From: Mobula birostris | Lineage: Eukaryota | DNA: 64,000 bases | Direction of reading: 5' to 3' | Assembly: GCF_030028105.1 (NCBI RefSeq) | Contig: NC_092374.1 | Span: 90,238,491 to 90,302,490, forward strand | The notes under the pieces: model-generated | Databases searched by the model: none | Told to the model about the DNA's origin: nothing | What the model saw: only the letters and a program-made list of their open reading frames with translations | Shown here: in pieces, positions 220 to 57,327 of the stretch | Numbering within the stretch: the stretch's first letter is position 1 | Layout: every line of letters begins with the position of its first letter | Position numbers and translations under genes: made by a program

Positions 220-262
220 CCACTATCAACTGTACCAACACAAGACAGAGCGAAACGTCCAT
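220..262 (-). CDS. Gene C leader exon MDVSLCLVLVQLIV (rest of gene lies left of the window)
   Basis: gcgccATGG, 43 nt, phase-1 donor G|GTGAGT; paralog of the gene A leader. Confidence 0.78.
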
Positions 263-990
263 GGCGCCTCACCCACCAAAACTTCCTCTCTGGACCTGAT
301 CGCGTCCGGAGTTAACTCTGACTATGACTCACGACTGCCCTGTCACTGAATCAATGCTTCTGCTTTCTTCAGTCCCCCGACTCCGCCTCCAGCTCTTGGG
401 TTCCATCACCCCTCGGGACATTTCCCTTGCTCCTGCCCCACCCGCCGCTCTCTACACTTGGGTCGGCTTGTGCGGCCAAAGTGGGGAGTGAGGTGAATCC
501 TCCTGTACTGAGGTTGAGTTCGGGATGCGAGAGTCAGTGAAGCGGGAAAGCAGCACCACAAACGAGTGAGGCGCAGGTTGGAGCAGGAGGCGGGAGTTCT
601 GATAAATGTTGTGTCTCCACGCGTATTGCATAGTTCAGAAGTTCTGAAGCCCGAAAGAGACACTTTTTGCAAATTATTGGGAGGAAATTGATTAGTTAGT
701 TAGTTGATTGACAGCAGCCAGAAACAGAAGTTAGGAGCCTGCAAACAGCCATTGATTCTTGCCAAACAATCGCTTAACATTAGAATATAAATGTAGAGGT
801 GCCTTTGCGTGACAGGGAGATAAAATCCAGAATTAAAAAGTCTATTTATCACCGTGGCAACTAAATTGGGAAAAAGAAAACGAAGGATGGCATTTATATA
901 AAAATCGGAGGATGGCGGGAACTTAAATAGGAGATCGGTATAAAATGACCTAAGAAGTTATACTGACACGTTTATGTATTGGACATACTC
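263..990 (-). promoter_or_regulatory. Conserved 5'UTR/promoter block of the A/B/C family, copy 1
   Basis: Non-repeat sequence directly upstream of the leader, retained with high similarity at 16356-16990 and 35195-35900. Confidence 0.55.
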
Positions 991-999
991 TTAAATAGT

Positions 1000-1240
1000 T
1001 TCTTTATTGAGTTACAGCCTGGAATGCACCATTCCAGTCCTTCGAGACGCGCCACTCAACAGCCCCTGATTGAATCCTAGACGAATCACGGGACAATCCA
1101 GCAACCCGTACATCTTCGAACTGTGGGAACACCCAGAGGGAACCCTTCTGGGTCACGGGGGTGAACGTCGAAGCTAAATACGGACATCGACGTCAGCATC
1201 ATGCGTGCTAATTCTGTTCAGAAACCATAATGGGAATCAT
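1000..1240 (-). mobile_element. V-SINE/HE1-like SINE
   Basis: Reverse complement carries the V-domain-like cccccgtgacccagaagggtt...cccacagttcgaagatgtac; paralogous copy at 35905-36150. Confidence 0.55.
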
Positions 1241-1249
1241 AGGCCTCCA

Positions 1250-3935
1250 AGTGCTGTCCAAGATGAACCTGAGGTGAGGCACACCACTGGTCATCAACTT
1301 CCGTGCAGTATATGACCCGTCTACAGCTACTCTTTGCCTTCTGTGGGCAAGCCAATTCTGGATCCACAAAGCAAGGACCCTTGGATCCCATGCCGACTTA
1401 CTTTCTCAATAAGCCTTGCATGGAGTACCTTATCAAATGCCTTGCTGAAATCTACATATATTACATCTACAGCTCTACCTCCATCAATATATCTAGTCAC
1501 ATCCTCAAAAAATTCAATCAGGCTCGTAAGGCACGACCCACCTTTGACAAAGCCATGCTGTCTATTCCTAATCACATTATGCCTCTCCAAATGTTCATAA
1601 ATCCTGTCTTTCAGGATCTTCTCCATCAACTCACCAACCACTGAAGTAAGACTCTCTGGTCTATAATTTCGTAGGCTATCTCCACTCCCTTTCTTGAATA
1701 AAATAACAACATCTGCAACCCTCCAATCATCCAGAACTTCTCCTGTCCCCATTGATGATGCAAAGATAATTGCCAGAGGCTCAGCAATCTCCTCCCTCAC
1801 CTTCTACAGTAGCCTGGGGTACATCTCGTCTGGTCCCAGTGACTTATCCAACTAGGTACTTTCCAAAAGCTCCAGCACATCCTTTTTCTTAATGTCTATA
1901 TGTTCAAGCTTTTTAGTTCACTATAAGTCATCCCTACAATTGCCAAGGTCGTTTTCTGTAGTGAATACTGAAGCAAAGTATTTATTAAGTACCTCTGCTA
2001 TCTCCTCTGGTTCCATAAACACTTTTCCACTGTTACACTTGATTGGTCCTATTCTCTCACATCTTATCCTCTTGCTCTTCACAAACTGTACTTGTAGAAT
2101 GCCTTGGGTTTTTCCTTAATCCTGCTTGCCAAAGCCTTCTCATGGCCCCTTCTGGTCCTCCCAATTTCATTCTTAAGCTCCTTCCTGCTAGCCTTATAAT
2201 TTTCTAGATCTCTATCATTACCTAGTTTTTTAAACCTTTCGAAAGCTTTTCTTTTCTTCTTGACTAGATTGTCTATAGCCTTTGTACACCATGGTTCCTA
2301 TACCCTACTACAATCATTTCCCTGTCTCACTGGAATGTACCTATGCAGAATGCCACACACATATCCCTGAACATTACCACATTTCTGCCATACATTTCCC
2401 TGAGAACATCTGCTCCCCATTTATGCTTCCAAGTTCCTGCCTGATAGCTTCATAGTTCCCCTTACTCCAATTAAATGCTTTCCTGACTTGTCTGTTCCTA
2501 TCCCTCTCCAATGCTATGGTAAATGAGATAGAATTGTGATCATTATCTCCAAAATGCTCTCCCACTGAGAGATCTGACACCTGACCAGGTTCATTTCCCA
2601 ATACCAAATCAAGTATAGCCTCTCCTCTTGTAGGCTTATCTACATATTGTGTCAGAAAACCTTCCTGAATACACCTGACAAACTCCACCCCATCTAAACC
2701 CCTTGCTCTAGGGAGATGCCAGTCAATATTGGGGAAATTAAAATCTCCCATCATGACAACTCTGTTATTATTGCACCATTCCAGAATCTGTCTCCCTATC
2801 TATTCCTCAATATCCCTGTTACTATTGGGTGGTCTATAAAAGGCACCCAGTAGAGTTATTGACCACTTCCTGTTTCTAACTTCCACCCACAGACACTCAG
2901 TAGACAAACCCTCCATGACTTCCTCCTTTTCTGCAGCCGTGACACTATCTCTGATCAGCAGCGCCACGCCCCATCCCTTTTGCCTCCCTCCCTGATCTTT
3001 CTGAAACATCTAAAGCCTGGCACACTAAGTAACCATTCCTGCCCCTGAGCCATCCAAGTCTCTGTAATGGTCACAACGTCATAGCTCCAAGTACTGAGCT
3101 CATCTGCTTTGTTCATAATGCTCCTTGCATTAAAATAGACTCATCTCAAACCATCGGTCTGAGTGTATCCCTTCTCTATCACCTGCCTATCCTCCCTTTC
3201 GCATTGTCTCCAAGCTTTCTCTATTTGTGAGCCAACCGCCCCTTCCTCCGCCTCTTCAGTTTGGTTCCCACCCCCCAGAAATTCTAGTTTAAACTCTCCC
3301 CAATAGCCTTAGCAATCCTCTCCACCAGGATATTGGTTCCTCTTGGATTCAAGTGCAACCCGTCCTTTTTGTACAGGTTATGCCTGCCCCAGCAGAGGTC
3401 CCAATGATCCAGAAATCTGAATCCCTGCCCCCTGCTCCAATCAGTCAGCCACACATTTATCCTCCACCCCACTCTATTCCTATACTCACTGTCGCGTGGC
3501 ACAGGCAGTAATCCCAAGATTACTACCCTTGTGGTCCGCTTCTCAGCTTCTTTCCTAACTCCTTCTCTTTTCGTACTAATATGTTCACCTTCCCACTTCA
3601 GGATATCATGGACGCGATCAGAAGTGTCCCAGACCCTGGCACCTGGGAGGCAAACTACTATCCAAGTTTGTTTCCTATGTCCCCAGAATCGCCTGTCTGA
3701 CCCCCTAACTATAGAGATCCCCAATCACTGCTTCCACCCTCATCCTTTCCCTACAGTTCTGAGCCAAAGGACCAGACTCTGTGCCAGAGGCATGACCACT
3801 GTTGCTTCCCCCGGGAAGGTCACTCCCTCCCCCCAACAGTACTCAAACAGGAGTACTTAGTGCTAAGGGGGACAGCCACAGGGGTACTCTCTGGTAGCTG
3901 ACTCACCCTTCCCTCTTCTGACTGTTACCCAGTTA
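1250..3935 (-). mobile_element. CR1 LINE, degenerate (ORF1 esterase, APE, 5' part of RT)
   Basis: ORF fragments 3284-3724 (SGNH-like), 2374-3009 (GDFNFP endonuclease) and 1327-1800 (NYRP..SLTS, QHGF, DFSKAFD). Confidence 0.88.
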
Positions 3936-3989
3936 TCTGTCTCCCCAGGCCCCAGAGTGACTACCTGCCTCTCGTTCCTCTCTATCACC

Positions 3990-10538: not shown

Positions 10539-10591
10539 TCAGAGTTGGGTTTCCTGGAATGTCTCCTTCTTCAATCCCTGACTGTAGGCAT
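10539..10591 (-). CDS. Terminal cytoplasmic exon, copy 1 (DAYSQGLKKETFQETQL*), residual last exon of gene B
   Basis: Acceptor ccacctgcctgtttacag, 53 nt; differences from the other copies in the QETQL codons are synonymous. Confidence 0.65.
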
Positions 10592-16312: not shown

Positions 16313-16355
16313 CCACTGTCAACTGCACCAACACCAGACAGAGCGAAACGTCCAT
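16313..16355 (-). CDS. Gene B leader exon MDVSLCLVLVQLTV
   Basis: acaccATGG, 43 nt, donor G|GTGAGT; near-identical to the leaders at 262 and 35194. Confidence 0.72.
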
Positions 16356-21592: not shown

Positions 21593-21645
21593 TCAGAGCT
21601 GGGTCTCCTGGACTGTCTCCTTCTTCACTCTCCGAGTGTAGGTTT
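21593..21645 (-). CDS. Terminal cytoplasmic exon, copy 2 (ETYTRRVKKETVQETQL*)
   Basis: Acceptor ccatctgcctgttctag, 53 nt; same length, frame and stop as the copies at 10539 and 42154. Confidence 0.72.
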
Positions 21646-27600: not shown

Positions 27601-30600
27601 CAAAGCGAATCTTGCCTGACAAATCTATTAGAGTTCTTCGAGGAAGTACTGGAATGGATAGAGGAATGACTGACAGGCAGGAGGCAGCAACTGGGAAGAA
27701 ATGTGGCCTTTACTGGTGGGCTGCCCGTGACTAGTGGCGTTCCTCAGGGGTCAGTATTGGGACCACTACTTTTCACATTGTTTGTAAATGATTTAGATAA
27801 TGGATTTGATGGCTTTCTGTCAAAGTTTGCAGAAGATATGAAGGTAGATGGAGGGGTAGGTAGTGCTGTGGAAGAATGGGCAAAAAAGTGGCAGATGGAA
27901 TACTGTGTTCGGAAATGTATGCTATTACATTTTGGTAAAAGGAACAATAGTGCGGACTATTATCTAAATGGGGAGAAAATTCAAACAAAAGTGGTGCAAA
28001 GGGACCTAGGGAGGGATCCTCATGCAAGACTCCTAGAAGGTTAATTTACAGGTGGAGTCTGTGGTAAAGAAGGCAAATGCAATGTTGGCATTTATTTCAA
28101 GCAGGAATAGAATATAAAAACAAGCAGATAATGCTGAGGATTAATAAGACGGAAGTCAGGCTGCATTTGGAGTATTGTCAATAGTCTTGGGCCCCATATC
28201 TCAGAAGGGATGTGTTATCAATAGAAAGGTTCCAGAGGAGGTTCACGAAGATAATTCCAAAAATGAAGGGGTTAACATATGAGGAACATTTGGCAGCCTT
28301 GGGCCTACACGCACTGGAACTTACAAGAATGCCTGGGGATCTCAATGAAACCAACCGAATGTTGAAAGGTGGATGTGGGGAGGATGTTTCCTGTGGTGCA
28401 GTTACCAGAACTAGAGGGCACAGCCGCAAAATTGAGGGGCAACCCTTTAGAGCAGAGGTAGGGAGGAATTTTTTTTAGCCAGATAGTTGTAAATCTGTGG
28501 AATGCTCTTCCACAGACTGAGGGGGAGGCCAAATCTGTGGGTATATTTCGGGCAGAAGTTGATCGTTTCCTAATCAGTCAGAGCATCTAAGGATCAAGCA
28601 AGAAGGCAGGTGGGTTGGTGGGATCTGGGATCAGCCATGATGGAATAGCAGAGCAGAGTCCATGGGCTGAATGGCCTGTTTTATGGTCTTATGGACACTT
28701 AGTAGCTATCATATTAAGTATACCTGTACAACTGCTGGTTAATGCAAATATTTAATCAGCTAATTATGTGACATGACCTCAACGCAAATAATGCATGCAA
28801 ATATGGTCAAGGTTCAGTTGTTGTTTAAACCAAATCTCTCAATGGGGAAGAAATGCCTTTGAACTAACTTGGACATTAGGCCAAGTATCACCGAAACAGT
28901 TGATCTCCTGTGAATTACATGCACAACAGTCTCTAGATTTTACAGAAAATGGTGTGAAAAACACAATTAAAACAGTGAGCATTTGTTCTGTGGGTGAAAG
29001 CACCTGGTTAATGTGAGAAATGAAAGGAGAACGAGCAGTCTGGTTCAAGGTGACAGTGAATCAAATGTCGACACGTTCCAACAGTGGAGTGCAGAAGAGC
29101 ATCTCTGAATGCACAACACACCTAACCTTGAAGTGGATGGGCAGGATGAACTGTTTCAAATGCTGATTTGTTTAACTCTCTACATCTATAGATGTGTGAT
29201 GATTAATGTTGAAACTGAACTTGAAGACAACTCTGGGTTCCACTCTTGCACCAAATAAAGTGGCCACTGAGTAAAGAGCAGGATATCACAGGAAAAGGCC
29301 CTTCGGCCCATGATTTTGTACTGATCCAATAAAACTAGTAATGCCACAGTTAACTAACCTGGCTACATGAAGATATCTCTCCATTCCCTTCATGTCCATG
29401 GGAGGAGTGGTAATTTAAAACTGCTGCAAAAGTTGGTGCATCTCTGGAAATCTTGGCAAAATCATCTGGAGCATTTCAGATCGGAAGGGAATGGACTTTC
29501 CAACAATTCGATATTGAGGCTCCTCACAAATGGTAGGGAAAGTGGGATGAGGCTTGGGGTACATCTGCCGAAGTTTTAATAAAAGCTAAGGCTAACTTGA
29601 GGAGCCAAGTAGCCTAATCCTGCTCCTATTTTCCAAAGAGGACGTGAGAGGGATGGATGGGCTCCGCAAGCCGAGATTCACCATGGTAGAGTTTTCAGTG
29701 AAGGAGGATGGGTGTTACAAAGTCTGGAACCATCGTTCAGAGCCCCAGATTGTGCTCGACGGTGGACTGTGGATGGTACATAAATGGTACACCAAGTCTA
29801 ACGGGAAGCTGATGTGATTCATTCCATCGGACAAGGATCTGCAAGGACAGAGAATGCAGGTTACCTGTAACTGAGCTCCTCTTGATCAGGTAAGTGCCCA
29901 CGGTCCACACCACTGCCAGCAGTACTAGAACCAGCGCCAACCGGATCATTAGGATGGAGCTGTGGCTCAGGTTCTGCATCTCCTGAGTTACTGTGGTCAC
30001 TGTGGGGTCAACGAACCTCCTGTGAGTTGTGATCCAGAGCAGGGACTGAGACACAGCAGGAGAGGGCGGAGAGAGCAACCGGTTGTGAAGGACAGGGGTA
30101 ACACTTGGGATCAAGTTTGGAGATTGTGACCCAATGCCACAGGAGACGGGAGAGTCAGGGGCGCGGCGGGGGGGGTGGAATCTGAATAATCCTGAGGTGG
30201 CTCTGACTCTGAAGAGTTGTGATTGTGATTCAGCACAGACACAAGGTCCCAAGCACGAGGATGTTCCACACCTTGAGGAGAGGTGGACTCAAAGACTGTG
30301 ATGACAACAGTGAGTCAAACCGGAAGCATCCTAGGACTTGGAGAGAGGGGACTTGAATTTTACAAGGAAGAACGTGATTACAAAAACAAAAATCAAGGTC
30401 CATTATAGTCCAAATTAATATAGAGTTGGTCTATTAAAGTAGTGGTTGGTTTTCTGTCAGTTGCCTGAAGAACCAGATGTCTGAAGGGATGTAGCTATTC
30501 TTGAACCTGGTGGTGTGGGACTTCACTCCTCTATACCTGCCGCCGTGTGGCAGCTGCCTGAAAATGATATTCAGCAGTTGGTTGGATCATTCATTATGGA

Positions 30601-33600
30601 CGTTGCTCGCTGATCAGTAAGTTCACAGATAAGCGTAGATCCCTTAAAGGTGCTGTGCAAGTCGATAGGGTGGTTTGGAAGGTATATGGTCGGGGGGGCG
30701 CCATCACTAGTGGGGGCGATGGAGTTCACGAGCTGTGAGGTGATGTTACCACATTATAAAATCCTGATTAGATCACATTTGGAATGCCACATTCACTTCT
30801 GGTTACCACTGTACTGGAATGCTGTAGATGCATCAGAAAGGCCACAGAGGAGATTTAGAGGGATGGTATTTGTACTAGAGAGTCTTTCCAATGAAGGGAG
30901 GTTGAGTGAGCTCATGCTGTTCTCTTTGGAGCAATGCAGGATGAGAGGTGACTTGATAGAGAGGCACAAGATGATAAGAGACCTGTATTCAGTGGGCAGA
31001 CAGTGACATTTCCAGGGGTACAATGCTGAATAGGAGGTGGTGTACTTGTAAAGTGATTGGAGGGAAGTATCTGGGGGGAATTTATAGGTAAGTTTGTATT
31101 TACACAGACAGTTGTGGATGCATGAAACACCCTGCCAGTGTTCGCAATGGAGGCACATACGTTAGAGGTATTTGAAAAGCTCATAGATAGGGTCAAGGAT
31201 GATAGAAAAATGGAGGACTATGTAGGAAGGCTGTGTTAAATTAATCTTAGGGTAGGACAAAATTCCGACAGAACATATGAGTTGAGGGGCCTGTGTTAGA
31301 GATCAAGGCGTTAGAGAAGAGAAGGTGGCGGTGCGACACAACACGTAGCGACCACTCCAGAATGAATATCTGTTATTTGTTAAGTAGGGTGCCGTGCACA
31401 ATCCTGATTTGATGGAGACGGACATGAGAAGCATGGAGGAACATCTGGTGAGACTTCTGAAATGCCTGTTTCGCTGCTGCTGCTACTGTGCGATCCAGAA
31501 TCTCGAGAGGGGAAGGTCCTGAATCCTCGGCTTTGCCTGTTGCTTGGTGGATAGGGCTGGGATCGAAGTGCTCGGCAGAGATGGTGTTCGGTGCTCGATG
31601 TCGGAGGGCTGGTCAGGGGCTTGAAGTTTTTGGACGGACTCAGAATTAGCTGTGGTCGGGTGCTTCCCGGGTGCTGCATCAGCAAGTTTGTGGTGCTGGA
31701 GGTTCATAGCAGGGAGAGTTTTTCTTCCTTTGACTGTCTGCTTGAGATGATGGGGCTATTGGGACTCTGAGACTTTTTTTTTACCGTGCCCATGGTCTGC
31801 TCTTTATCAAATTATGGTATTGCTGTGCACTGTTGTAACTATATTTTATAATTACGTGGTTTTTGTCAGTTTTAGTCTTGGTCTGTCTTGCGTTTCTGTG
31901 ATATCATTCTGGAGGAACATTGTATCATTTCTTAATGCATGCATTACTAAATGACAATAAACGAGGACTGAGTGCCCTCATACTCTAATCTACTGTGCTG
32001 TAATGTTCTCTGTTCTCCAATGCAACATCAATGATATTGCTGACAATGTGGAGGGTAAACTTGTCAATACTAAAACTCATTGTGTTGGTGAAATCGGCTG
32101 AGATATCACTGAGGGTATTTATTCTGGAGAAGTTTGAGGTAAAAGTCATTCTGAACATTGATGAGACCAGGACATGGACTACTGAGGGAGAGAGTGGAGG
32201 GGGTGTTCTCACGACAGAAAGTGTGAAGAATGTCCACAGGATATCATCTGGGACAGAGTGCTTCAGTAATGAGGAGGGACTTGCGCTGTATTCCCTGGAA
32301 TGGACATGGTTGTGCAGGAACATGATTGAGGTACACATGCCCATGAGGGCAGAGACAGGGTAGATTACAGGTGATATTCCATAAAACATAAAGGTTTAGG
32401 CTAAGGGATTTGGAGGGGGTCTGAGAAGGAAGTTTCACACAGAGAGCGGTGAGTATTTGGAACCCACTGCCAGAGAGGGAGGGGCGGAGCAGTCACTGAC
32501 ATCCTTTCGGAATTATCTACACCAGTACCTGAACTATCCAGGGACAGGTACAGGACGAAGCCCCGGAGGTGAGCTTAATATGGGTGGCAGTCAATCGGTC
32601 AGTATGGATGTGATGGACTGAGTGGACTGACCTCCTGCAGGAGGAGAATGTGAAAACATGAAGCTGGGTTGATGCACAGGGATTAATTGAAACAACATTT
32701 AGACAAGAGCAGAGGTCAGGGTAAGGATTCAGGACTCACCTCTCACTGACAGAAATGTCCCCGAGATGCTGAGCCATTTAATTGGCTTCCGATGATCTTC
32801 CAAAATTGTCACACGGCAGAAATAAAAATTGGAGTCATTTCCTTTCAACCGATGTAAGCGGATGGAGCCGGTCTTGTCTCGAAGTGCGGAGCCCAGGAAT
32901 TCGATCCGGCCTCGGTATTCACCGAGTGCGCTGTTTCGTGAAGAATCGAATATCTCTGTACCAAAGAAGCCACCAACTCTCCAAGTGATATGAATGTCTC
33001 TGGGTGTATCAGTGTCCGGGTAAGTGAAGGAACAGGGGAGAATGACGGACCCACTCTCTGCAGCCTCCTGGTACCCCAGCTGCTTCACCAGGAACTCACG
33101 GCTACCGGTCGGTGCTGAGGGAAAAGGGAGCAAACGATGAATCGGGAACCGCCTGTCACGTTTCGTTCGGCGGAAAATCATCCCTTAGTACTCTCAGCAA
33201 CAGACTAATACCTGCACTCTGAATAATAAACTGGTCCAATCCAAACGAAATCGTCTACTCTACAAGCCTGTGACCACCAAAGAGGAATTAGGCAAACCAG
33301 ACATCGATCCCTGAGCCGCTGGATAAGATGTCGGCATCAAACTCACTTTAGTGGACCTGCCATTCTCAACAAAAAAAAATCGTTTAAACCCTTGGATTAG
33401 CTCACAACGTGTAACCCATAGATGTGAATTTGTTATTCTATTTATAATCCGGAAGATCCAACAATAGATCGCAGCCTGTAACTCTCTCTGGGCATATATT
33501 TCTAAATACTATAATCCTCTGAACCCGCGATTGTAGTCCAGTCTGCAACTCACTCCCGGGCATCTGTGTATCGCTAGGCAAACAATCTGAACACCAGATT

Positions 33601-34521
33601 AGATTCTGGTCCATATCCAACTCCCGCAGTTTCATCTGCTTCGTCTGCCTGTCTAATTCATTATTCGGCACAGAGACATGTAAACTCCGTAAACCCGCAG
33701 CTTCCTCCATTTACCACTCGTTGTTCCCTCACCTGCAACACTCCAACCCCAGACAACACCTCCAGCCTCATCAAACTACGTACACGGTCTCTGAGACAGA
33801 GGAAGGGGTTCTCACCTTGAACCGACAGGACGGTCCCAGGACCTGTGTACTCTTCCCGCAAGATCACCACACTGCAGAAGTACATGTTCGTGTCCCTTTC
33901 TTTGACCTGGAGTAAGCGGATGGAGCCCGTCTTGTCTCTAAGTGGCGAACCCAGGAACTTGATTCGGTCACTGAACACTTTGTGTGTGTAGTTATCCAGA
34001 TACCTGAATATATCTGTCTTGTAGTGAATGCGAACTCTCCATCTGATGTCAATGTCTCGGAGTGAGGAGATTTCCGGGTGGGTAAAGGTGCAGGTGAGAG
34101 TGACGGACTCGTTCTCTACAGCCTCCATGTATTTCGGCTGCTCCACCCGGAAGCCACTTCCGCTGCTCCATGCTGAGGGAGAGGGAGGGAGCAAATGGTC
34201 ATTTGGGAACCTCCACCCACATGTCACCCGGCGGATAATCAGCCCGTAATTCTCTCAGCGCCAGGCAAGTCCCTGCCCTCTGATTGACAGACCGAGCTCC
34301 AGAACAATTCTTTCTCCTCTCAAACCCGTTAAATCCAAATTGCAACAGACCCGCATTACCAACCACCAGCACCCTGACCCGACGTGGATAACTTCACTCA
34401 CTGAATTGTGAACTCACTCTCCCTCCTGCATACTCACTTTCAAGAGCTCTTTACAAATCTAGTTGTCAGCATATTTTTTGTTTACAGAATTTGACATTTG
34501 ACATTTACCTCGAACCCTCGC

Positions 34522-34596: not shown

Positions 34597-35194
34597 GATT
34601 CCAGCCTGTACCTTCAGAATCTGCTGTACACTGATAAACACCTTAAAACCTTTTATTGGATTCCGATCTGTAACTATCCCCGGGAATCTGTTATTGACGG
34701 AGTGAAAGCCTAAAATCACATCTTGCTCTGCCGCCCTTCGAGCTCTCTCTGCCCGATCTGTCCCTGTCCTCTATCCGATCAGCTACACAAGCCGCAACGA
34801 ATGGGTCTCGCTCGAAAAACCTATTCACTTCAGCAACCCCCCAACTTTAACCCCGACTTTAGCAACAGGCCTTTCCCGGATCTCCTGTTCCCTATTTCTA
34901 CTCTTCTTACCAGTTAGCGGTGGGGGCACTTGGTGTTGTTCCTAATCTCCGGTGTGGGTGCTATTCAAATACAGGCATTTGTTTCTCCAACCCGGGACAG
35001 CATCACACGGGCTTCCTCTCTGAAATGGAGAGGTGGGACCGGAGCAGGACCTCCATAAACAGTGCCGAGTATTTTAGGAGGAGTTGGCTGATGAGCGGGG
35101 TGGTGAGGAATGGGGATAGAGGTGGTACGGAATGAAGCTGAGTCTACTCACCCACTGTCAACTGTAGAAACACCAGACAGAGCGAAACGTCCAT
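21593..35194 (-). CDS. Gene A: two-V-domain Ig-superfamily receptor (PILR/Siglec/NKp30-like), join(35194-35152, 34172-33816, 33114-32740, 29999-29865, 21645-21593), about 320 aa
   Basis: Five exons with GT/AG ends, all introns phase 1, and the summed length of 963 nt is one open frame: signal peptide, V1, V2, short stalk plus TM with Arg, tail ending QETQL*. The TM-exon acceptor and the choice of last exon are inferred. Confidence 0.8.
22260..28690 (+). mobile_element. Older near full-length CR1 (host of the nested CR1)
   Basis: ORF1 remnant 25364-25591, endonuclease remnants about 26000-26700, RT remnants 27188-28478; paralogous to 42920-46930. Confidence 0.85.
22727..25208 (-). mobile_element. 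Young CR1 LINE, 5'-truncated, 702-aa open RT region, nested in an older CR1
   Basis: ORF 22819-24927 ([25 protein letters not shown]); (gaaacata)n tail; ttgaa at 22722-22726 and 25209-25213. Confidence 0.92.
28695..29275. mobile_element. Tc1/mariner-like non-autonomous element (TIR ..cagtggccactttatt)
   Basis: Right end aataaagtggccactgagt with a degenerate left end; related copies at 15480-15590 (truncated) and 58380-58895. Confidence 0.55.
29678..29766 (-). CDS. Possible alternative short-tail exon of gene A (VHRRAQSGALNDGSRLCNTHPPSLKTLPW*)
   Basis: Phase-1 acceptor ccatccacag after a 98-nt intron; ATTAAA about 100 nt past the stop (29580-29575). No paralogous copy is available to test conservation. 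Confidence 0.35.
29865..29999 (-). CDS. Gene A stalk/transmembrane exon with TM arginine
   Basis: TTVTQEMQNLSHSS-ILMIRLALVLVLLAVVWTVGTYL-IKRSSVT, then donor ACAG|GTAAC. The phase-1 acceptor ccccacag|TG gives 135 nt, but other upstream AGs exist, so the 5' edge is uncertain. Confidence 0.78.
31320..31980 (+). mobile_element. Unclassified interspersed repeat; inverted copy at about 60770-61390
   Basis: Shared 3' segment ggaggaacattgtatcatttcttaatgcatgcattactaaatgacaataaa and shared tcgtgtccgttcgggaatt-type internal sequence. Confidence 0.55.
32740..33114 (-). CDS. Gene A Ig V-set exon 2 (PILR/Siglec-like)
   Basis: 375 nt, acceptor ctcccttttccctcag|CA and donor AGAG|GTGAGT. Motifs GSVILPCSFTYP, DIHITWR, YFCRV and WLSISGTFLSV. 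Confidence 0.92.
33816..34172 (-). CDS. Gene A Ig V-set exon 1
   Basis: 357 nt, acceptor tccctccctctccctcag|CA and donor CAAG|GTGAG. Canonical V residues: SVTLTC, IRW, GSIRL, D-x-x-x-YFC, and J-like TGPGTVLSV. Confidence 0.92.
34527..34594. repeat. (TG)34 microsatellite in gene A intron 1
   Basis: Pure TG run; the homologous site in gene B (about 15745-15773) is a short interrupted TG tract. Confidence 0.97.
35152..35194 (-). CDS. Gene A leader exon MDVSLCLVFLQLTV
   Basis: gcgccATGG Kozak context, 43 nt, hydrophobic peptide, phase-1 donor G|GTGAGT; joins in frame to AWSSGSG-FRVEQ of V1. Confidence 0.85.
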
Positions 35195-42153: not shown

Positions 42154-42206
42154 TCAGAGCTGAGTCTCCTGGAGTGTCTCCTTGTTCACTCTCTGAGTGT
42201 TGGCAT
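42154..42206 (-). CDS. Terminal cytoplasmic exon, copy 3 (DANTQRVNKETLQETQL*)
   Basis: Acceptor ctatctgcctgtttccag, 53 nt, phase 1; lies downstream of the gene D TM exon. Confidence 0.68.
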
Positions 42207-48711: not shown

Positions 48712-49014
48712 CTGTTGACGGAAAACGATTCCAGTGAGGGATGGTGGGAAGGATAAGGGTGGGAGTAGGGAGGCCATCTCACCTTGGCAGTCTTTCCTCA
48801 CCAACATCCAGGTAGCAAACAACAGGAGCGGCACCAGCCCAATTAGAAAGAGGTACCACGAGGAGGAAGGCAGTGCCCCTGCAGCTGAAACGAACCAAAA
48901 GACATTCAAATCACCTTAAACACAGTGAGATGTGTCAGAGTAAATCAGAGGGAATAAACTCAACAACTTGTGAGAGACAATGTGCGTGTGGGAACTATTC
49001 CCCCACTGAGGGTC

Positions 49015-49077
<63 letters not shown>

Positions 49078-52000
49078 AGGGGGGGGGGGACTGACCCCAG
49101 TGAGAGTCAGTGTGTGTAGGTGGGACTGTCCCCCAGTGAGGGTCAATGTATGTGTGGGACTGTCCCCCAGTAAGTGTCAGTGTGTGTGGGACCAGTCTCT
49201 TCATGAGGGTCAGTGTGTGTAGGTGGGACTGTCCCCTGGTAAGGGTCAGTGTGTGTAGGACCAGTCCTCTTGTGAGGGTCACTGTGTGTGGGGGACCANN
49301 NNNNNNNNNNNNNNNNNNNNNNNNNNNNNNNNNNNNNNNNNNNNNNNNNNNNNNNNNNNNNNNNNNNNNNNNNNNNNNNNNNNNNNNNNNNNNNNNNNNN
49401 NNNNNNNNNNNNNNNNNNNNNNNNNNNNNAGGGTCAGTGTGTGTGTGTATGTGTGTGTGTGACCAGTCCCCCAGTGAGAGTGAGTGTGTGTGACCAGTCC
49501 CCCAGTGAGAGTGAGTGTGTGTAGGTGGGACTTTCCCTAGTGGCGGTCAGTGTGTGTGGGACCATCCCCCAGTGAGGGTCAGTGTGTGTGTGTGTATGAC
49601 CCATTCCCCAGTGATCTCCTAGCTCGCTCTCATTCTCCCCTGTGCCCTGCTTGCCCCGTGGCCTGGTGACCTTACCGAGTACTTCCACCCTGGTACCATT
49701 GCCATGGTAGTCGTTCTGCATTGACATCAGCCTGATAACGGTGATGGCACACAGGTATTCTCCACCGTCCCCTCTCCTTGCGCTCACCACCACCAGGTTG
49801 GTTGCCCAGCCCTGTTCCTCTTCCTTGATGTGCATCTCTCTGCTCTGATTTGTGCTGTTTTTCCAGTATTTGATGTTCATCAGGGTCTTTGTGAATTGGA
49901 GCTGGGAATTTCCTACGGTCCATTTGAAGATCACCGTTTCCAGTGGCGTGACCTCTGTCGTATTGAGCTGGCAGCGGAGACGGAATGATTTCCCTTCCAT
50001 CACAGAGAGGGTAGCTGGGGTCTGCTGGACCATGACAATCCCCATTGCACCTGTGTGTTGCAGACAAGAACAACTCAGATGGGATTATTCCGCTTGAAAG
50101 CTGAAACGTTAGCAGAAAGGTCCATGCCCCAAATTGCCGTCATGCAAATCCTTGACAAAACTCGCCAGCGTCTGTTATTTCTTACATGTTTTGTGTTTCT
50201 TACTTTTAATACATGTACTCATTTATAGGACCGTGTTCTATCATCAGTCGTAGGTCGCACAACACCAGGATCAGGAACCGTTACTACTCTACAACCATCC
50301 GGCTCCTGAACCAGACTGGATAACTTCATTCACCTTAACTCCGAACTGATTCCACAACCTGTGCACTCACTTTCAATGACTCGACATCTCATGTATTCAA
50401 TGTTATTCATTTATTTACCTACCTATCTATTTATTATTACTGCTACTACTTGTATTTACGCAGCTTGTCTCCTTTTCCACGTTAGCTTTCGCCAGTCTTT
50501 GTTTTGTGTGCAGTTTTTCATTGAATCTATTGAATTTCTTTGTTGTATGGTGAATGCCTGCAAGAAAATGAATCACAGGGTAGTATATGGTGACACGTGC
50601 AGTGCTGTGCAAAGGACTCAGGCACATTTATGTAGCTAGGGTGCCTAAGACTTCCGCACAGTACTGTATTGGTGAATGTGCAGTAGAGAGCCAGTTTGTA
50701 CATCTGGCGGAGGCAAAGGCTGTTGGGAACGGCGAGGATGGAGCGCCACGGGAGGGTTGTGGGACAGGTGGCAGAGAAGGAGTGCCAGGGTGAGGGGGTG
50801 TCACAGGTGCAGACACACCCAGCCCTGAGACACCAGGCAAGGTCATTCGATCCCAAACAATTGGTTTATTGATCATTACAGAATGTCTCTAGTGCTTCCT
50901 GCTCCCTCCCCTCTCGCTTCCCCTTTTCCCAACCATGATTCCACTCTCCCTGCCCCCTTTCCACTGTCAGTCCACAATAGAGACCCAGATCAGAATTAAG
51001 TTTATCACTCACATATATCACAGAATTTCGGAGCTTTTTTCAGCAGCGGTACAGTGTAATACATAAAATTACCACAGTACTCTTCAACAGTCTTAGGCAC
51101 CCTAGATATATATACAGTAACAAGCAAGAGAAAATCTGCAGATGCTGTATGCAGTAATCCAGGTACTCGCGTTCAATTGACTACCTCTCCCGCTTCTTCT
51201 CCCACCGCGTTCTCCGCGCCACGCTTTCCGCCATGAGAAGGTACCCTGGGGTTCCTATACCTGTTACTTCCACAACTCTGGGATTCCCCATCCGCCGCCA
51301 ACGGTAGACCCCTCTCTCCGCCGCCAACAGTGGACCCGTCTCTCCGCCGCCAACAGTGGACCCGTCTCTCCGCCGCCAACGGTGGACCCGTCTCTCCGCC
51401 ACCTCCAGTGCTACTTTATGCTCCGCCAGATCCACGCTTTCAATCACAGCTTCTTTGACTTTCTCATGTCGCGCCATGATTGGAAGATCATCCACCTACA
51501 GACTACAGAACCTGCCATCTCCAATGCCGGAAGGCAGGGAAGTCTCCAGACCGTGGTCCCTGTTGCATACCTCAACGATCCTGAGCAGATTCAAAACCCG
51601 GGCTCCACCACCATCAATGCGACTTCCAACAACCCCGGACACCTTCGAAGTGCTGATTACGTAACCTCCAACTCCGACTTCAGCCATGACCAACAGCACC
51701 TCCACGTCAGGACTTTACACGCTGCCACTGGAACCTCGGTCTCCCCTTCCCCTACCACCACTCCGCAATCCCATCTTCCTCTATCCCACACTCCCTGAAC
51801 AGCCCAACCCTGCCCTCTCCTTTGACACTACCAATTCTCTTCCCCTTCTGTCCCCAGCTCTCATCTGTGCCAGGCCTCATCTTTGTCCCCCTGCGCCCAC
51901 ACCTCATTGAGTTCCACACCCGCCATGGCACTGAGCTCCTGTTCTGCCGCCTTCGTCTCCGTGCCAATTTCTTTGACAAGGACTCTTCATTCACACCGAT

Positions 52001-55000
52001 GACCGCTTCTCCGTCTTTAACCCTCCTCCGCTTCCTGGACACCCCACTCTGGTCATCTGCCTGCTCTGGACCTTTTCATTGCCGTTTCTACTTCACCACT
52101 CCTCTCTCCAATTACAACCTCGCTCCTTCCAGACGAACTGCTCTCCACTCTCTGCGCATTAACCCCTAACCTCGCCTCACTGCATATAAGGGAGGTGGGG
52201 GTACCTTGCTAAGGCCCGGCGACAATTGTCAGACACCTCCTCCTACTTACTATTGGAACAGGAGCTCACTAAGGAGCACCAGGCCATTGCCTCCCACACC
52301 ATCACCAACCTTATTAGCTCTGAGGATCTCCCATCCACTGCCATCTACTTCCTACCCAAGATCCATAAGCCCGTCTGTTCAGGTAGACCCATTGTTTCTG
52401 CTTGTTCCTGCCCCTCTGAACTTACATCTGCATATCTGGACTCAGTTTTATCCCTCCTGCTTCAGACCCTTCCCACCTACATCCGTGACACTTCACATGT
52501 TCTTGATCTTTTCAAGGATTGCAAGTTCCGGGGCCCTGATCATCTTATTTTTCACTATGGATATCCAGTCCCTATACGCCTCCATCCCCCAGCAGGAAGG
52601 CCTCAAAGCTCTCTGTTTCTTTCTGCACACTAGACCCAACAACTCCCTCTCCACCACCACTCTTCTCCATCTCACAGAACTTTCCTCACTCCTAATCATT
52701 TCTCCTTCAGCCACACCCCACCCCCCCCCCCCACCACTGCCTTCAAAGATGTAGCCATGGGCACTCGCATGGGTCCCAGCTGTGCCTGCCTGTTCATTGG
52801 CCATGTGGGCCAGTTCATATTCCAAGCTTACACTGGTATCACTCCCCGACATTTCCTATGCAACATCGACGACTGCATTACTGCTGCTTCCTGCACTCGT
52901 GTGGAGCTCATCGACTTCATCCACTTTGCCTCCAGTTTCCCCCTGCCTTCTAATTTACCTGGTCCATTTCTGACACCTCTCTCTCCTTTCTTGATCTCAC
53001 GGTCTCTATCTCCGGAGACAGCTTATCCACCAATGTCTACAATAAACCCATGGATTCTTACTCAGCACTATACCTCTTCTCACCCTGTTATTTGTAAAAA
53101 TGCCACCCCCTTCTCTCAATTTCTCCATCTCTGCTGCATCTGGGGTCAGGATGAGGCTTTTCATTCAAGGGTGAAGGAGATGTCTTCTTTCAAAGAAAGG
53201 GACTTCTCTTCCTCCACCATCAATGCTGCCCTCAACTGCTTCTCTTCCATTTCACACACATCTGCTCTTAACCTATCCTGTCACCACTCCAGCAGGGATA
53301 GGATTCCTCAACCTCACCCACCACCCCACCAGCCTCCGCGTCCAGCACAGAATTCTCTATAACTTCTGGCATCTGCAGTGGGATCCCACCACCAAGTACA
53401 TCTGTCCCTTCCCCTCCCCTTCACTTCCCAACTTGCTTGTCCATTCGTCCCTCCCCACTGATCTCCCTCCTGGCACTTATCCTTGCCAGCAGAACAAGTG
53501 CTACACCTGCCCCTGCACCTCCTCCCTCACAACCATTCAGGGCCCCAAACTCTCCTTCCAGGTGAGGTGACACTTCACCTGTGAGTCTGTTGGGAGTCAC
53601 CTACTGTATCTGGTGCTCCCGATGTGGCCTCCTGTATATCAGGAGACCTGATGCAGTATTGAAGACTGCTTCGCCGTGTACCTATGCTCCGCCCGCCAGG
53701 AAAACCAGGATCTCCCAGTGGTCACTCATTTTAATTCCCATTCCACGATGAGGCCACACTCAGGTTGGAGGAGCAACAGCTTATATTATGTCTGGGGAGC
53801 CTCCAACCTGATGGCATGAACATCAATTGGGAATGTAAGATGGAGACTGAATTGAGATTGTGCATCATTCATTATACAAGCACCTTTGCTCTGTCTGCAG
53901 CAAAGTTCTAAGTTCAAAGTACACTTATTATCTATGTATAGATTATACAATCCTTCAGATTCGTCTCCTTACAGGCAGCCACCAAACAAAGAAACCCAGA
54001 AGAACCCATTAAAGAAAAAGAAGGCTGTCAAACACCCAACGTGCAAAGCAAAACAAAACCTAGTATTTCTCAGAAGCCAACCATTTAAATCCCAACCTCC
54101 ATTCTCATTCCGGCATGTCAGACCACGGTCTCCTCTACTGCTATGATGAGGCCACTCTCAAATGGAGGAGCAACACCTGATATCCTGTCTGGATAGCCTC
54201 CAACTTAATGGCAGGAAAATCAACTTCTCTGACTTCTGGTTATTTCTTCCCACCCCCCGCTTCTCTCTTTTCCCATTCCCCATTCTGACTCCCCTCTTAC
54301 CCCTTCCCTTCTCCTCACCTGCCCATCACCTCCCTCTAGTTCCCCTCCTCCTTTCCTGTCTCCCATTGTCCACAATTCTCTCCTATCAGATTCCTCCTTG
54401 GTCAGCACTTTATCTTTTCCACCGATCACCTCGAGCTTCTCACTTCATCCCCATACCCTGCCCACCTACCTTTCCCCTCATGTGATCTCACCCATCACCT
54501 GCCAGCTTGTACAGCTTCCCCTTCTCCCCACCTCCTTACTCTGCCTCCTTCCCTTCCTGTCCTGACGAAGGGTCTCGGCCCAAAGTGTTGATTCCTTATT
54601 CCCCTCTATAGATGCTGCCTGGCCTGCTGATTTCTTCCAGTATACTGTGTGCATTACCCTTCCTTCTGGGAGTTTGGGTTCTTACATATGACTAACTCTC
54701 AACCTCTCAGTCTAAGTCATTGGTGCTGGCTATCTACTCCACCTGTGCCTCGTATACTGTACACCCCTACAGTGTTGGTTGGAGTGGGGACTAGGCCTCA
54801 AGCCGCAGGCTCGCCTGCTGCTGCAATCCAGGTGAGAAGATGCTGGAGGCGGTGTAGCATGGTGTCCGTGCTCGGTTGTGGGCAGGAGTCTCCCATCAGT
54901 GCTTTCCTCCACTGTTGGTGCAATATCAGGCTGGATTGCCAGGAACTGTACAATCAAATTGCGGGACATGCCGCTCAGAGTCTTGTACTATATATGTGTT

Positions 55001-56027
55001 TTCTTACATGTCTATGTTTTGTTTTTTTTTAATATGCTGTGTACGTTTTACACCTTGGCTGCAGAAGAATGCTGTCTCATTTAGCTGTATCCACGTATGG
55101 CTCAATGATAGTTAAACCAGATTTGATTTGATTTGATAAAATTCTGGAAGTTTGGTGCTCTTGGGACTATGGTGCCGCAGTTTAGCGGCCCTGCGGTAAT
55201 GTAGCAGGTAGAACAATCATTTTATAGAGCCATCAATTCCCAATTAGGGTTCAAAACTCACTGTTGTCTGTAAGGAGCTAATACCGTCGCCCTGTGACCA
55301 TGTGGGTTTCCTCCGGGTGCTCCAGTTTCCTCCCACATTCCAAAGATGTACGCGTTAGGGTTAGTGAGTAGTGGGCAGGTTATGTTAGTGCCAGATGTGT
55401 GGCAAAACTTGTGGGCTGCCCCAACCACAATCCTCAGACTGGGTTGGTCGTTGACATGAATGACGTATTGCACTCCGCTCCATCTGCCAGAAGTGGGACT
55501 GCTCGGAAGTCAAACATTTTAATTCCCATTCCCATTCCCATTCTCAGGGTGGAAGAGCAGCACCTTAAATTCCATGTGGGTAACCTCACCCTGATGGCAT
55601 GAATATCCATTTCTTCTTCCAGTAAAATAAGTTTTGCCTCCCCCTGCCCTCCTACTGTTCCCCACTCTGACCTTTAACCTCTCTTCATCTGCCTATCACT
55701 TTCTCCTGGGTCCCCTCCTCCTTCCCTTTCTCCTATGGTCCACTCTACCCTCCTGTCAGATTTCTACTACTCCAGCCCTTGAACTTTTCAACCCACCTGG
55801 CTTCACCTATCACCTTCTACTAACCTCCATTCCCTCCCCTCACCTTTTTATCCTGGCGACTTCCCCCTTCCTTTTCAGTCCTGAAGAAGGGTCTTGGCCT
55901 GAAACGCTGACTGTTTATTCATTTCCATAGATGCTGCCTGACCTGAGCTCCCCCAGTATTTTGTGTATTGCTTTATATTGCACTGTTTGTTTCAAAACAT
56001 ACACAGCACATTCAAAATAGAAAGCAA

Positions 56028-56061
<34 letters not shown>

Positions 56062-57327
56062 TGCAAAAAAAACCCACATCTATAGTCCAAGAGCCTGAGT
56101 GACATGTCTTGCAAATTGATGGCACATTTCCTGGCCATCCAGCCTGTCGTTCCACCAATTGAGCACTGGAGGGCAGTACCTATAGGAGAGGCCAGCCCCC
56201 AACTGAGCACGGACACCACGCTACACCGCCTCCTGCGTGTCCACTCCTGGACTGCAGCAACAGGCAAGCCTGCAGCTTGAGGCCTAGTCCACGCTACAAC
56301 TGAGGCCAATTTGAGAAAGGATTTTCAGGTTAGCCTAGAACAGATTCCTAGCATGAGATATTGTCCCATCCCAAACAGCTACAAAAGTCAGCTTGATATT
56401 CTTTGGAATTTTGCAAAATGAGGGGTGACTTTATCGAGACATTGTGAGGGGTAGAGATATTTCCACCAGTGGGAGAGACCTGAATGAGGGAACAGAGTTA
56501 CTTTCAATAAGACTATTGAAAAGTCCCCTTGAATGATAAGACAGGTTCTTGTCCTCGTAACCTACCTCACTGCGGTCTTGTACTTTTTTTTGTCTGCCTC
56601 TACTGCAATTTCTCTATAGCTGTTATACTTCGTTCAATGGTTCAGTTGTTCCATTTAGTATCAAGAAATGTATACAATATCCAATGTGAAAATCTTACTC
56701 TTCACAGGCATCCACAAAACAGAAGAAATATCCCAAAGAATGGATGACAGAAAAACGTTAGAACCCCAAAGCCCCATTTCCCCCACCACCCCCCTCCCAC
56801 CCATGCCTCCTTTATCACTGCATCGATATGTTAGGACCAGGTAAGGTCCTCAGAGACAGCAACACCGAGGAACTAGAAATTGCTCACTCTCTCCACTTCT
56901 GATCCCTCTATGAGGACTGGTGTGTATATCCAAACTTCTCCGGTTGTTCAAATTGGTTTGTTATTGTCACATGTATAGTGAAAAGCTTGTCTTCCATACT
57001 GAAATTGGAGTTGAACTTGGTTTCTTGTTGTCACAGTTCAACACACCACAGAAACCAGCCTTCCCTCTCTAGACTCTGGCTACACTTCTCACTTCCTCGG
57101 TAAAGCAGCCAGCACCTCTTGTGAAATCTAGTGCCTCTGACGGTTCTCTGTTCCCTCAGTACCACCAGCCTAGATCAAATCTCTTCTCGAACTGAAGACT
57201 GCGACTCACTGAGCAGTGAAGGAAGCAGGGAGAGACAATGAAGGTCAGTCTGCTTACCTCTGATTTGCATAAGATGTAACCAGAGAATGGATCCCAGCAC
57301 CGCCTGTGACCTTCCAAGGCAGCCCAT
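48611..57327 (-). CDS. Gene D: single VJ-type Ig-domain receptor (NKp30/TMIGD2/CD28-like), join(57327-57258, 50050-49676, 48884-48783, 48711-48611), about 215 aa; alternative ending at 42206-42154
   Basis: Leader, V and TM exons have GT/AG ends, are all phase 1 and join in frame. The cytoplasmic exon is less certain. Confidence 0.75.
48783..48884 (-). CDS. Gene D transmembrane exon (AAGALPSSSWYLFLIGLVPLLLFATWMLVRKDCQ)
   Basis: 102 nt, acceptor ttttggttcgtttcag and donor CAAG|GTGAG; uncharged hydrophobic stretch followed by an RK stop-transfer. Confidence 0.85.
49017..49615. repeat. (GT)n microsatellite plus ~32-36 bp GT-rich minisatellite spanning a 131-N assembly gap (49299-49429)
   Basis: Repeated gtgagggtcagtgtgtgtaggtgggactgtccccca-like units on both sides of the gap. 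Confidence 0.9.
49676..50050 (-). CDS. Gene D Ig V-set (VJ-type) exon
   Basis: 375 nt, acceptor cacacag|GT and donor CTCG|GTAAG. Motifs VQQTP, FRLRC, FKW, DGGEYLC and HGNGTRVEV; four N-glycosylation sequons (NTT, NST, NQS, NGT). Confidence 0.9.
50600..51110. mobile_element. Tc1-like MITE family (TIR cagtactgtgcaaaagtcttaggcac); related copies at about 10700, 21745-22150, 42310-42810 and 58935-59665
   Basis: Recurrent inverted pairs cagtactgtgcaaaagtcttaggcac / gtgcctaagacttttgcacagtactg with a shared internal sequence. Confidence 0.65.
51120..54650 (+). mobile_element. Long degenerate Penelope-like element with a 26-bp tandem repeat (about 51293-51405)
   Basis: YFLPKIHKP..GRPIVSAC, MGTRMGPS, NIDD and GIY-YIG remnants, broken by frameshifts; PLE-type terminal repeats at 53730-53830 and 54100-54650. 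Confidence 0.82.
55175..55465 (+). mobile_element. V-SINE/HE1-like SINE
   Basis: gtgggtttcctccgggtgctccagtttcctcccacattccaaagatgtacg central domain. Confidence 0.65.
57258..57327 (-). CDS. Gene D leader exon MGCLGRSQAVLGSILWLHLMQIR
   Basis: gcaATGG with an in-frame TGA upstream, 70 nt, donor AGAG|GTAAGC; joins to GAMG-IVMVQQTP. Confidence 0.75.

Follow-up and report, generated by a model that had tools for sequence, protein, structure and literature searches.

A tandem receptor array with a putative PILR-like pair and a separate single-V receptor gene in the ray Mobula birostris

The window that we analyzed, a 64,000-nucleotide stretch of Mobula birostris CM057560.1, contains a tandem array of type I membrane receptor genes, all on the minus strand, that are assembled from phase-1 exons and whose introns are packed with LINE fragments. 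In all likelihood the array comprises the activating half of a PILR-like receptor pair (gene A), a gutted copy (gene B), the start of the inhibitory partner (gene C), and an unrelated single-domain receptor (gene D). The existence of these split genes as sets of exons is confirmed: A and D are complete, B has been gutted, and C contributes only its leader to the window.

Exon sets in the window and their relatives

All exons listed by an earlier sequence-only reading of this DNA were found on the minus strand, every internal border is of the AG/GT type, and every intron is in phase 1. Spliced in silico, gene A encodes 320 amino acids, gene D 199, and gene B 31, with no internal stop codons, and the three V exons (V1 and V2 of gene A and the V exon of gene D) all pass the Pfam V-set cut-off (E = 2.8e-14, 1e-07, and 6.9e-08, respectively). 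At the predicted exon joins the translations agree in every residue with protein models that RefSeq has for related rays. With all elements present, GT-AG borders, and open frames, the gene models that the sequence-only reading had proposed for A, B, C, and D hold, and its attribution of the DNA to a cartilaginous fish is correct: the first 10,262 nucleotides of the window (1-10262) are 100% identical to a locus of M. birostris CM057560.1 (L004) whose P0088 gene starts at the gene C leader exon. This exon (220..262, minus strand, as are all exons given below) is the first of the annotated P0088 protein of 384 amino acids, and the remainder of the gene precedes the window start.

Gene A consists of a leader exon (MDVSLCLVFLQLTV plus one nucleotide; 35152..35194), two exons for PILR-type V-set domains (V1, 33816..34172; V2, 32740..33114), an exon for the stalk and a transmembrane helix (ILMIRLALVL...; 29865..29999), and an exon for a short tail that ends in ETQL and a stop codon (21593..21645). 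The splice sites of the leader and tail exons were checked, and the transmembrane exon was placed by tblastn with P0005 and P0010 and by its splice sites. The encoded protein has a signal peptide, two tandem V-set domains, a transmembrane helix with an arginine near its outer end, and a tail of 17 residues. Inhibitory tail exons for gene A are not found inside the window, and a LINE lies about 100 nt past the gene A stop codon. The promoter and leader block of gene A is 78-79% identical to the corresponding blocks of genes B and C.

Gene B is a decayed copy in the array. It retains a leader exon with an intact ATG and GT donor (16313..16355), and a tail exon with an intact AG acceptor (...KKETFQETQL plus stop; 10539..10591) that shares 89% identity with the tail of P0005 from Hypanus sabinus; its V1, V2, and transmembrane exons are gone. 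The homology to gene A ends about 400 nt short of the expected position of V1, and the stretch in between is occupied by LINE RT and EN fragments. Since sensitive blastn found no V or transmembrane relic anywhere in the window beyond the exons of A and D, we conclude that gene B is truly without these exons. Evolution of the cluster by duplication and loss, as proposed from its sequence, is borne out.

For gene A or D no exact M. birostris protein is on record. RefSeq models with the same exon structure and domain order are available for Mobula hypostoma (LOC134346253, LOC134346254, and LOC134346255) and H. sabinus (LOC132396364 and LOC132396977), and the ray orthologues are 84-92% identical. 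Gene D corresponds to LOC134346253, and gene A to LOC134346254 and to LOC132396364, the latter also encoding 320 amino acids. The description of the cluster as cryptic therefore applies to the M. birostris protein set, but not to other rays and sharks, where the orthologues are already RefSeq models; models named PILR alpha or beta by NCBI are found in Carcharodon, Cetorhinus, Heptranchias, Hemitrygon, and Pristis. These models in other elasmobranchs are computed predictions without published characterization. In M. hypostoma the three LOC numbers follow one another, which would fit the same D-A-C gene order as read from the numbering.

Gene D and its tail exon

The first exon of gene D (57258..57327; phase 1, GT donor) supplies the start codon and the signal peptide in 23 codons and one further nucleotide. 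It does not differ from the leader of P0011, a paralogue in M. birostris, and shares 96% identity with that of M. hypostoma P0001. The V-set exon (49676..50050; 375 nt, phase 1 at both ends) contains a J-like GNGT motif and is 92% identical to M. hypostoma LOC134346253. The third exon (48783..48884), found by tblastn with P0001 and P0003 at 93-97% identity and with its splice sites checked, encodes an uncharged transmembrane segment, and the fourth (42154..42206) is a PILR-type tail exon for a short tail ending in ETQL and a stop codon; isoform X4 of M. hypostoma (P0003) has a matching tail. Gene D itself has no tyrosine motif. P0011 was considered as the gene D of the window and rejected; it is a paralogue located 0.9 Mb away, with 97.6% nucleotide identity in the V exon and 100% in the leader and transmembrane exons.

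The second intron of gene D contains an assembly gap (a run of N at 49299..49429) embedded in a minisatellite, with arrays of 31-36-nt units of the same kind of motif on both sides. The gap starts 246 nt past the donor of the V exon and ends 414 nt ahead of the acceptor of the transmembrane exon, and in the M. hypostoma orthologue V is joined straight to the transmembrane segment with no extra residues between them. The gene model thus does not depend on the frame in which the gap would be read.

The tail exon of gene D shares 90% nucleotide identity with that of gene A, and its flanks are 82-84% identical to the flank of gene A's tail. In Mobula, gene D would be spliced to this ETQL tail exon or, in an alternative form, would be read through from exon 3 into a tail with a stop near 48631. 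That a lost PILR copy is hidden between the transmembrane and tail exons of gene D was rejected, as no leader, V, or transmembrane relic occurs there. A 1.3-kb match at 43369-44633 resembles a LINE 5' region rather than unit homology. In Heptranchias, a D-like and a PILR-like gene are found on one chromosome, but they lie on opposite strands with about 0.54 Mb between them, which argues against the adjacency of D and PILR-like genes being ancestral.

Judged by its sequence, gene D is a member of a separate single-V family that is unrelated to the V domains of A and C; in a profile-to-profile comparison its V domain is 13% identical to PILR-type V domains. It is possible, albeit doubtful, that this family falls within the extended CD28/CD28H-like family defined by Quiniou et al. 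2024 (PMC11599192), and that gene D is perhaps the chondrichthyan counterpart of CD28HL3 with its inhibitory tail lost in Mobula. The D-family sequences have a proline seven residues after the F-strand cysteine, followed by a GNG motif, a layout comparable to the published CD28H-type CDR3; the shark homologues carry an inhibitory-type tail in which xIYSSL is followed, after about 22 residues, by TxYxxV (ITSM), resembling the ITIM/ITSM pair of CD28HL3; and the nearest protein-language-model cluster is "CTLA-4-like". However, the residue before the proline is lysine or arginine where the published motif has a hydrophobic residue, neither EIP nor PPP is present, no CD28HL3 was found in Chondrichthyes in the published survey, and the accessions that we searched are absent from its supplements. 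A protein atlas search for D homologues returned generic single-V clusters (CTLA-4-like, IGSF6, PD-1, and CD7-like), which we treat as leads only, and nothing but generic V domains came up when the PDB was searched with a D-family profile. The structure model of the D V domain, with a pLDDT of 47.5, is too poor for use and was set aside before the fold search.

The PILR-like pair formed by genes A and C

Among proteins in the PDB, phmmer places PILRα/β at the top for both V domains of gene A (E = 1.3e-13 for V2 and 3.2e-07 for V1). The predicted structure of V2 (pLDDT 88.6) points in the same direction: the top five Foldseek matches in Swiss-Prot are all PILR, with TM values of 0.81-0.85, and the next-best fold is that of NKp30, with a TM of 0.74. 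The YFCRV motif of V2 aligns with YFCRV of human PILRα. With mammalian PILR the identity does not exceed 28-31%, and we name the A/C family PILR-like by its nearest V domain, its orthology to mammalian PILR being putative. The sequence-only reading had recognized no named family in this architecture; the rank of PILRα/β for both V domains of gene A, and the names PILR alpha or beta that NCBI gives to the orthologues in sharks and rays, provide one.

Gene A is predicted to be the activating member of the pair. The basic transmembrane residue is an arginine in all elasmobranch activating forms examined (8/8), and the IR-containing transmembrane segment of gene A is also present in activating forms from sharks and rays. 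By analogy, gene A would signal through an ITAM adaptor recruited by this arginine. In V2, an arginine aligns with the F-strand arginine of human PILRα needed for sialic-acid binding (R126), and the tryptophan of the F-G region is present as well; V1 has a serine where the arginine would align. Again by analogy, V2 would bind sialylated glycoprotein ligands through the conserved arginine, as in mammalian PILR, where an arginine is critical for sialic-acid binding (PMC13358205).

Gene C lies downstream of gene A on the same strand, and its V1-V2 region is nearly identical to that of gene A. The annotated protein, for which five isoforms are recorded, has an uncharged transmembrane segment and a long tail with the tyrosine motifs IIYSVV and CLYVDV. 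These features identify gene C as the probable ITIM-tailed inhibitory partner of the Arg-bearing gene A, and it would signal through SHP-type phosphatases. The logic of paired receptors, as the sequence-only reading had it, is thereby upheld; the uncharged partner, however, is gene C and not, as that reading implied, gene D.

The V segments of A and C, introns included, are 94.6-94.8% identical, whereas the promoter regions are 79% identical, and in a tree of V domains the activating and inhibitory sequences cluster by species. This indicates that gene conversion has homogenized the exons that encode the ectodomains of the two genes. The dN/dS values between A and C are 1.9 for V1 (13 non-synonymous and 2 synonymous substitutions) and 0.47 for V2, counts too small for a claim about selection.

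One could assume that A and D are not expressed or are in decay, that function is confined to gene C and the distant paralogue of D, and that the cluster consists mostly of relics. Gene B proves that copies in the array can decay, a LINE sits close behind gene A, and the absence of exact recorded proteins for A and D stands against five isoforms for gene C and one protein for the D paralogue. Nevertheless, we consider this assumption unlikely, as A and D are open throughout their frames, have lost none of their GT-AG sites, and are conserved in exon structure, their orthologues have been modelled in M. hypostoma and H. sabinus, and the V2 ratio given above, small as its counts are, also speaks against it.

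We find it a little less likely still that the A/C family represents a Siglec-15-like or NKp30-like lineage whose resemblance to PILR reflects generic V-set similarity. Siglec-15 (E = 6.7e-07) and NKp30 (E = 3e-04) match V2 too, NKp30 is its next-best fold, and the transmembrane residue is an arginine, as in NKp30, and not a lysine. However, PILRα/β rank above all other solved or Swiss-Prot proteins for both V domains, Siglec-15 trails PILR by six orders of magnitude, a V-set of the PILR type rather than a C2-set forms the second domain, and the shark inhibitory tail GIVYATL resembles the ITIM of human PILRα. A PILR-like A/C family agrees best with these observations. The idea that gene D is an NKp30-like or XMIV-type NK receptor, also raised in the sequence-only reading, is very improbable: the one V domain of gene D does bear a J-like GNGT-x-V motif, but the best 60 PDB matches, whether of D or of the D-family profile, do not include NKp30, comparably weak scores are obtained with TCR Vα, PD-1, PD-L1, JAML, and antibody V domains, the transmembrane segment is uncharged, and the shark relatives have inhibitory-type tyrosine tails.

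Distribution, origin and comparison with known systems

Forms with an arginine in the transmembrane segment and forms with an ITIM tail recur in four sharks and five batoids. The sharks have one V domain, A and C have two, and the inhibitory gene of M. hypostoma has three; the tree places the V-domain duplication within the batoids. The sialic-acid arginine position, kept by gene A, is occupied by glycine in the activating copy of M. hypostoma and by leucine in that of H. sabinus. The arginine is always kept in copies that are inhibitory or have an uncharged transmembrane segment, and is often lost from activating copies. In Heptranchias, the only neighbor seen is a gene with a PLAC8 domain, which lends no support to synteny with the human PILR locus at 7q22.

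In the literature that we searched, PILR is described in mammals only, and no paper joins PILR with cartilaginous fish; the papers listed as matching PILR together with "shark" or "teleost" carry neither term in the title. In a ray we see the full paired logic, with an ITIM-type inhibitory receptor, an activating partner with a charged transmembrane segment, a retained sialic-acid arginine, and homogenized ectodomains, and matching genes are found in sharks. This makes the origin of a sialoglycan-sensing pair testable near the base of the jawed vertebrates. Copies that kept or lost the arginine form a natural series that bears on activating partners as counter-measures to pathogens exploiting inhibitory receptors. 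In practical terms the locus is of modest value; its genes belong to a known kind, are unexceptional within it, and had already been predicted in sister species. As a tentative scenario, which we hold with less than even confidence, the PILR pair of ITIM-tailed and Arg-bearing receptors may go back to the ancestor shared by all jawed vertebrates and may have been kept as a gene-converting pair for more than 400 million years; rays would have expanded it through tandem duplication of the V domain, and in Mobula the neighboring checkpoint-like gene D, inhibitory in sharks, would have exchanged its original tail for a captured PILR tail exon, resulting in a tail-swapped hybrid.

Mammalian PILR provides the closest V-set by both sequence and predicted fold, including the F-strand arginine and neighboring tryptophan present in V2 of gene A. 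It shares the tandem arrangement, on one strand, of an ITIM-tailed inhibitory gene and a short-tailed activating gene with a basic transmembrane residue, and ectodomains homogenized between the partners; a 2006 paper, cited in a review, reports in its title that the PILR locus of mammals underwent duplication and conversion. However, mammalian PILR has one V domain, compared to the two or three in these rays, and V1 of gene A is without the arginine. V2 has the canonical B-strand cysteine where human PILRα has phenylalanine, the manta transmembrane arginine takes the place of the lysine of PILRβ, which pairs with DAP12, and the manta activating tail ends in the PDZ-ligand-like ETQL.

Siglec-15 resembles gene A in its Siglec-type V domain with an F-strand arginine, its basic transmembrane residue, and its ancient distribution among vertebrates, but it combines a V-set with a C2-set domain and has a transmembrane lysine, whereas the second domain of gene A is a PILR-like V-set and its transmembrane residue an arginine. 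NKp30 (NCR3), the second-best fold match of V2, is an activating receptor with a transmembrane arginine, a feature shared with gene A; it differs in being a single gene without an inhibitory twin and in scoring below PILR. With gene D, the extended CD28 family (CD28H, CD28HL1-3, CD28X, and PD-1; PMC11599192) shares the single V domain, the GxG motif, the proline spacing, and, in the shark homologues, ITIM/ITSM-like tails, but gene D has neither the EIP/PPP signatures of that family nor its tyrosine motifs.

Exon inventory and gene models

In a six-frame scan of the window, three segments of the minus strand were free of stops and showed Ig hallmarks. Read directly in the DNA, all three have AG and GT at their borders and phase 1 at both ends, and all three exceed the Pfam gathering score for V-set domains (E = 2.8e-14, 1e-07 and 6.9e-08). 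The short exons, which are absent from any ORF list, were placed by tblastn of database protein homologues onto the window: three PILR-type leaders (35194, 16355 and 262, minus strand), one leader of a different type (57327, minus strand), two transmembrane (TM) exons, and three short tail exons, each encoding ETQL and a stop (42206, 21645 and 10591, minus strand). Dinucleotides are canonical at every exon junction of A (the activating gene, leader-V1-V2-TM-tail), B (leader and tail) and D (the single-V gene), and in-silico splicing gives 320 aa for A, 199 aa for D and 31 aa for B, with no internal stops. When each exon was searched for by sensitive blastn, no extra copies turned up in the window, so the inventory is exactly that of the sequence-only reading. 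The anatomy it gave for genes A to D is right and lies well beyond chance. Database searches have no exact M. birostris protein for A or D on record; the orthologues of both are RefSeq predictions in sister taxa.

An N run at 49299-49429 sits in intron 2 of D, starting 246 nt past the V-exon donor and ending 414 nt ahead of the TM acceptor. In the M. hypostoma orthologue of D the TM segment follows straight on the V domain; therefore no coding sequence is expected in the gap, and the frame across it is irrelevant. Long ORFs touching or spanning the gap were rejected as genes, being intron read-through. In the surrounding interval (49017-49522), next to a (TG)30 run, the gap is flanked on either side by minisatellite arrays whose 31-36-nt units share one kind of motif. 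The introns are also full of non-LTR retrotransposon ORFs (22819-24927 and 12614-13372, minus strand; 14033-14818, plus strand); one is a reverse-transcriptase ORF open over 702 aa (RVT_1, E = 2.4e-32), and another encodes an endonuclease (Exo_endo_phos, E = 3e-20). The intervals 44756-46033 (minus strand) and 52206-53570 (plus strand) hold a 425-aa ORF without a Pfam match, with similar ORFs on the opposite strand; a short LLYIGET…-type motif may hint at a Penelope-like element.

Gene B is a gutted copy. Its promoter and leader (15745-17038) are 78% identical to those of A (34567-35913) and its tail exon 85% identical, the interval between leader and tail is occupied by LINE reverse-transcriptase and endonuclease fragments, and sensitive blastn of the window with every exon found no V or TM relic of B. 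Compared with the H. sabinus activating tail, the tail of B scores 89% and the more distant tail of A 60%, which implies that the two tail types are older than the Mobula-stingray split.

PILR affinity and paired architecture of A and C

In PDB searches the V2 domain of A matches human PILRα best (E = 1.3e-13), together with PILRβ, followed by Siglec-15 (6.7e-07), nectin-1, sialoadhesin and NKp30; V1 also finds PILRα/β first (3.2e-07). The AlphaFold model of V2, built with 21 homologues as input, is confident (pLDDT 88.6), and its top five Swiss-Prot folds are all human or mouse PILRα/β (TM 0.81-0.85, identity 28-31%), with NKp30 below them at TM 0.74. Aligned to human PILRα, V2 places YFCRV on YFCRV and KWLSISGT on QWQSIEGT. 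An Arg of PILR and Siglec V domains is critical for sialic-acid recognition (reviewed in PMC13358205), and by this alignment the Arg in YFCRV of V2 occupies the matching position; V1 of A carries Ser there and is without the Trp loop. After V2, gene A encodes a TM helix that contains Arg (ILMIRLALVL…) and then a tail of 17 residues, the last four being ETQL.

Gene C, the inhibitory partner annotated as P0088, has its leader alone inside the window. Positions 1-10262 match the first exon of the P0088 gene and the DNA upstream of it at 100.0% over 10,262 nt (chromosome CM057560.1, GCA_030028105.1), and the window as a whole spans about 90.238-90.302 Mb of that chromosome. Its V1 and V2 are near-identical to those of A, its TM segment is uncharged, and its long tail carries IIYSVV and CLYVDV. 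Just before the window start, the locus of gene C (L004, 13648-14296) has a third V cassette of V2-like type, with 84.6% identity to the V2 segment of A, which the 384-aa product leaves out; three V domains are used in the M. hypostoma orthologue (P0085).

Both forms, activating (Arg in TM, short tail) and inhibitory (ITIM tail), recur across elasmobranchs. The activating form is found in H. sabinus (LOC132396364, 320 aa as in A), M. hypostoma (LOC134346254), Hemitrygon, Carcharodon, Cetorhinus and Heptranchias, and the inhibitory form in H. sabinus, M. hypostoma, Hemitrygon, Pristis and Heptranchias, where the tail reads GIVYATL … VLYAAV. Several of these homologues of A and C have been named PILR alpha or beta by NCBI. 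In Heptranchias perlo (CM068671.1, 24.20-24.25 Mb; L002 and L003) the PILR-like cluster consists, on one strand, of a pair of 216-aa V-set genes, of which P0079 is the Arg-TM form, and then a 280-aa ITIM gene; a PLAC8-domain gene adjoins it.

The sequence-only reading had proposed a paired-receptor cluster of a cartilaginous fish evolving by duplication and loss, and in kind this holds. It had seen no named family in the architecture; the family can be named, as PILR-like, and nothing in our analysis supports its NK label. The receptor kind is already known; the combination of tandem V domains, Arg-TM and ETQL tail is new. Our literature search found no paper joining PILR with cartilaginous fish, and where PILR terms were paired with 'shark' or 'teleost', neither term appeared in titles.

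Concerted evolution of the pair

A and C are 79% identical over 1.7 kb of promoter and leader, 94.6% over 877 nt at V1 and 94.8% over 935 nt at V2 (both with flanking intron), and 85.8% in the V1-V2 intron. A maximum-likelihood tree built from 26 V domains splits those of sharks and of batoids into separate clades (100/99 each), and V1 and V2 of batoids are distinct lineages, which places the V duplication within the batoids. Activating and inhibitory copies pair up by species (M. birostris V1 96/92 and V2 85/90; H. sabinus V2 97/95; Heptranchias 100/95; Carcharodon 92/80). Read together with the Arg-TM exon, whose homology between sharks and rays is clear, this grouping in the sequence tree speaks for gene conversion in the ectodomain exons and against the pair having arisen anew repeatedly.

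The V1 exons of A (window 33817-34170) and C (L004, 11339-11695) differ at 15 nt, 13 of them replacements, counts too few to claim selection; the changed residues lie mostly between the FLGSP motif and the F-strand Cys. By hand count, the F-strand Arg is kept in all seven uncharged-TM genes, one of which (Carcharodon P0075) has no clear ITIM, whereas just three of the eight activating genes have it (A, Hemitrygon P0010 and Carcharodon P0074) and the remainder carry Gly, Leu, Leu, Leu and Lys. The difference is suggestive only (one-sided Fisher by hand ~0.02, ignoring shared ancestry).

Gene D, a separate family with a probably borrowed tail

D had been read as the uncharged-TM counterpart of A. 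This is wrong: compared profile to profile, its V domain shares 13% identity with the PILR type and is, by sequence, unrelated to it. An exhaustive HMMER search recovered an orthologue in M. hypostoma (92%) and a paralogue in M. birostris (96%). It also recovered uncharacterised single-V proteins, aligning at 30-41% identity, from Heptranchias, Scyliorhinus, Chiloscyllium and Heterodontus as well as from one caecilian. PDB searches with D or the D-family profile gave generic V-domain matches only, and NKp30 was not among the top 60. In Heptranchias a D-like gene lies on the same chromosome as the PILR-like cluster, 0.54 Mb away.

The tail exons of D and A are 90% identical, and their flanks 82-84% over ~1.2 kb; the ETQL exon of D is used by M. 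hypostoma isoform X4. The D paralogue, 0.9 Mb off on the opposite strand (L005; CM057560.1, 91.18-91.23 Mb), matches the nucleotides of D at 100% in leader and TM exons and 97.6% in the V exon, and the ETQL exon is absent from it. D, we infer, no longer has the cytoplasmic exons that it once had and has taken over the 3' end of a PILR-type unit. The RefSeq model P0011 (416 aa) fuses the D paralogue to a further V-set region, possibly a chimeric annotation.

The tails of the shark D homologues read xIYSSL, ~22 residues, TxYxxV. In the Pro spacing past its F-strand Cys, in a GNG motif and in how the tail is laid out, the D family resembles CD28H-like genes (PMC11599192), but it departs from the signatures published for them.
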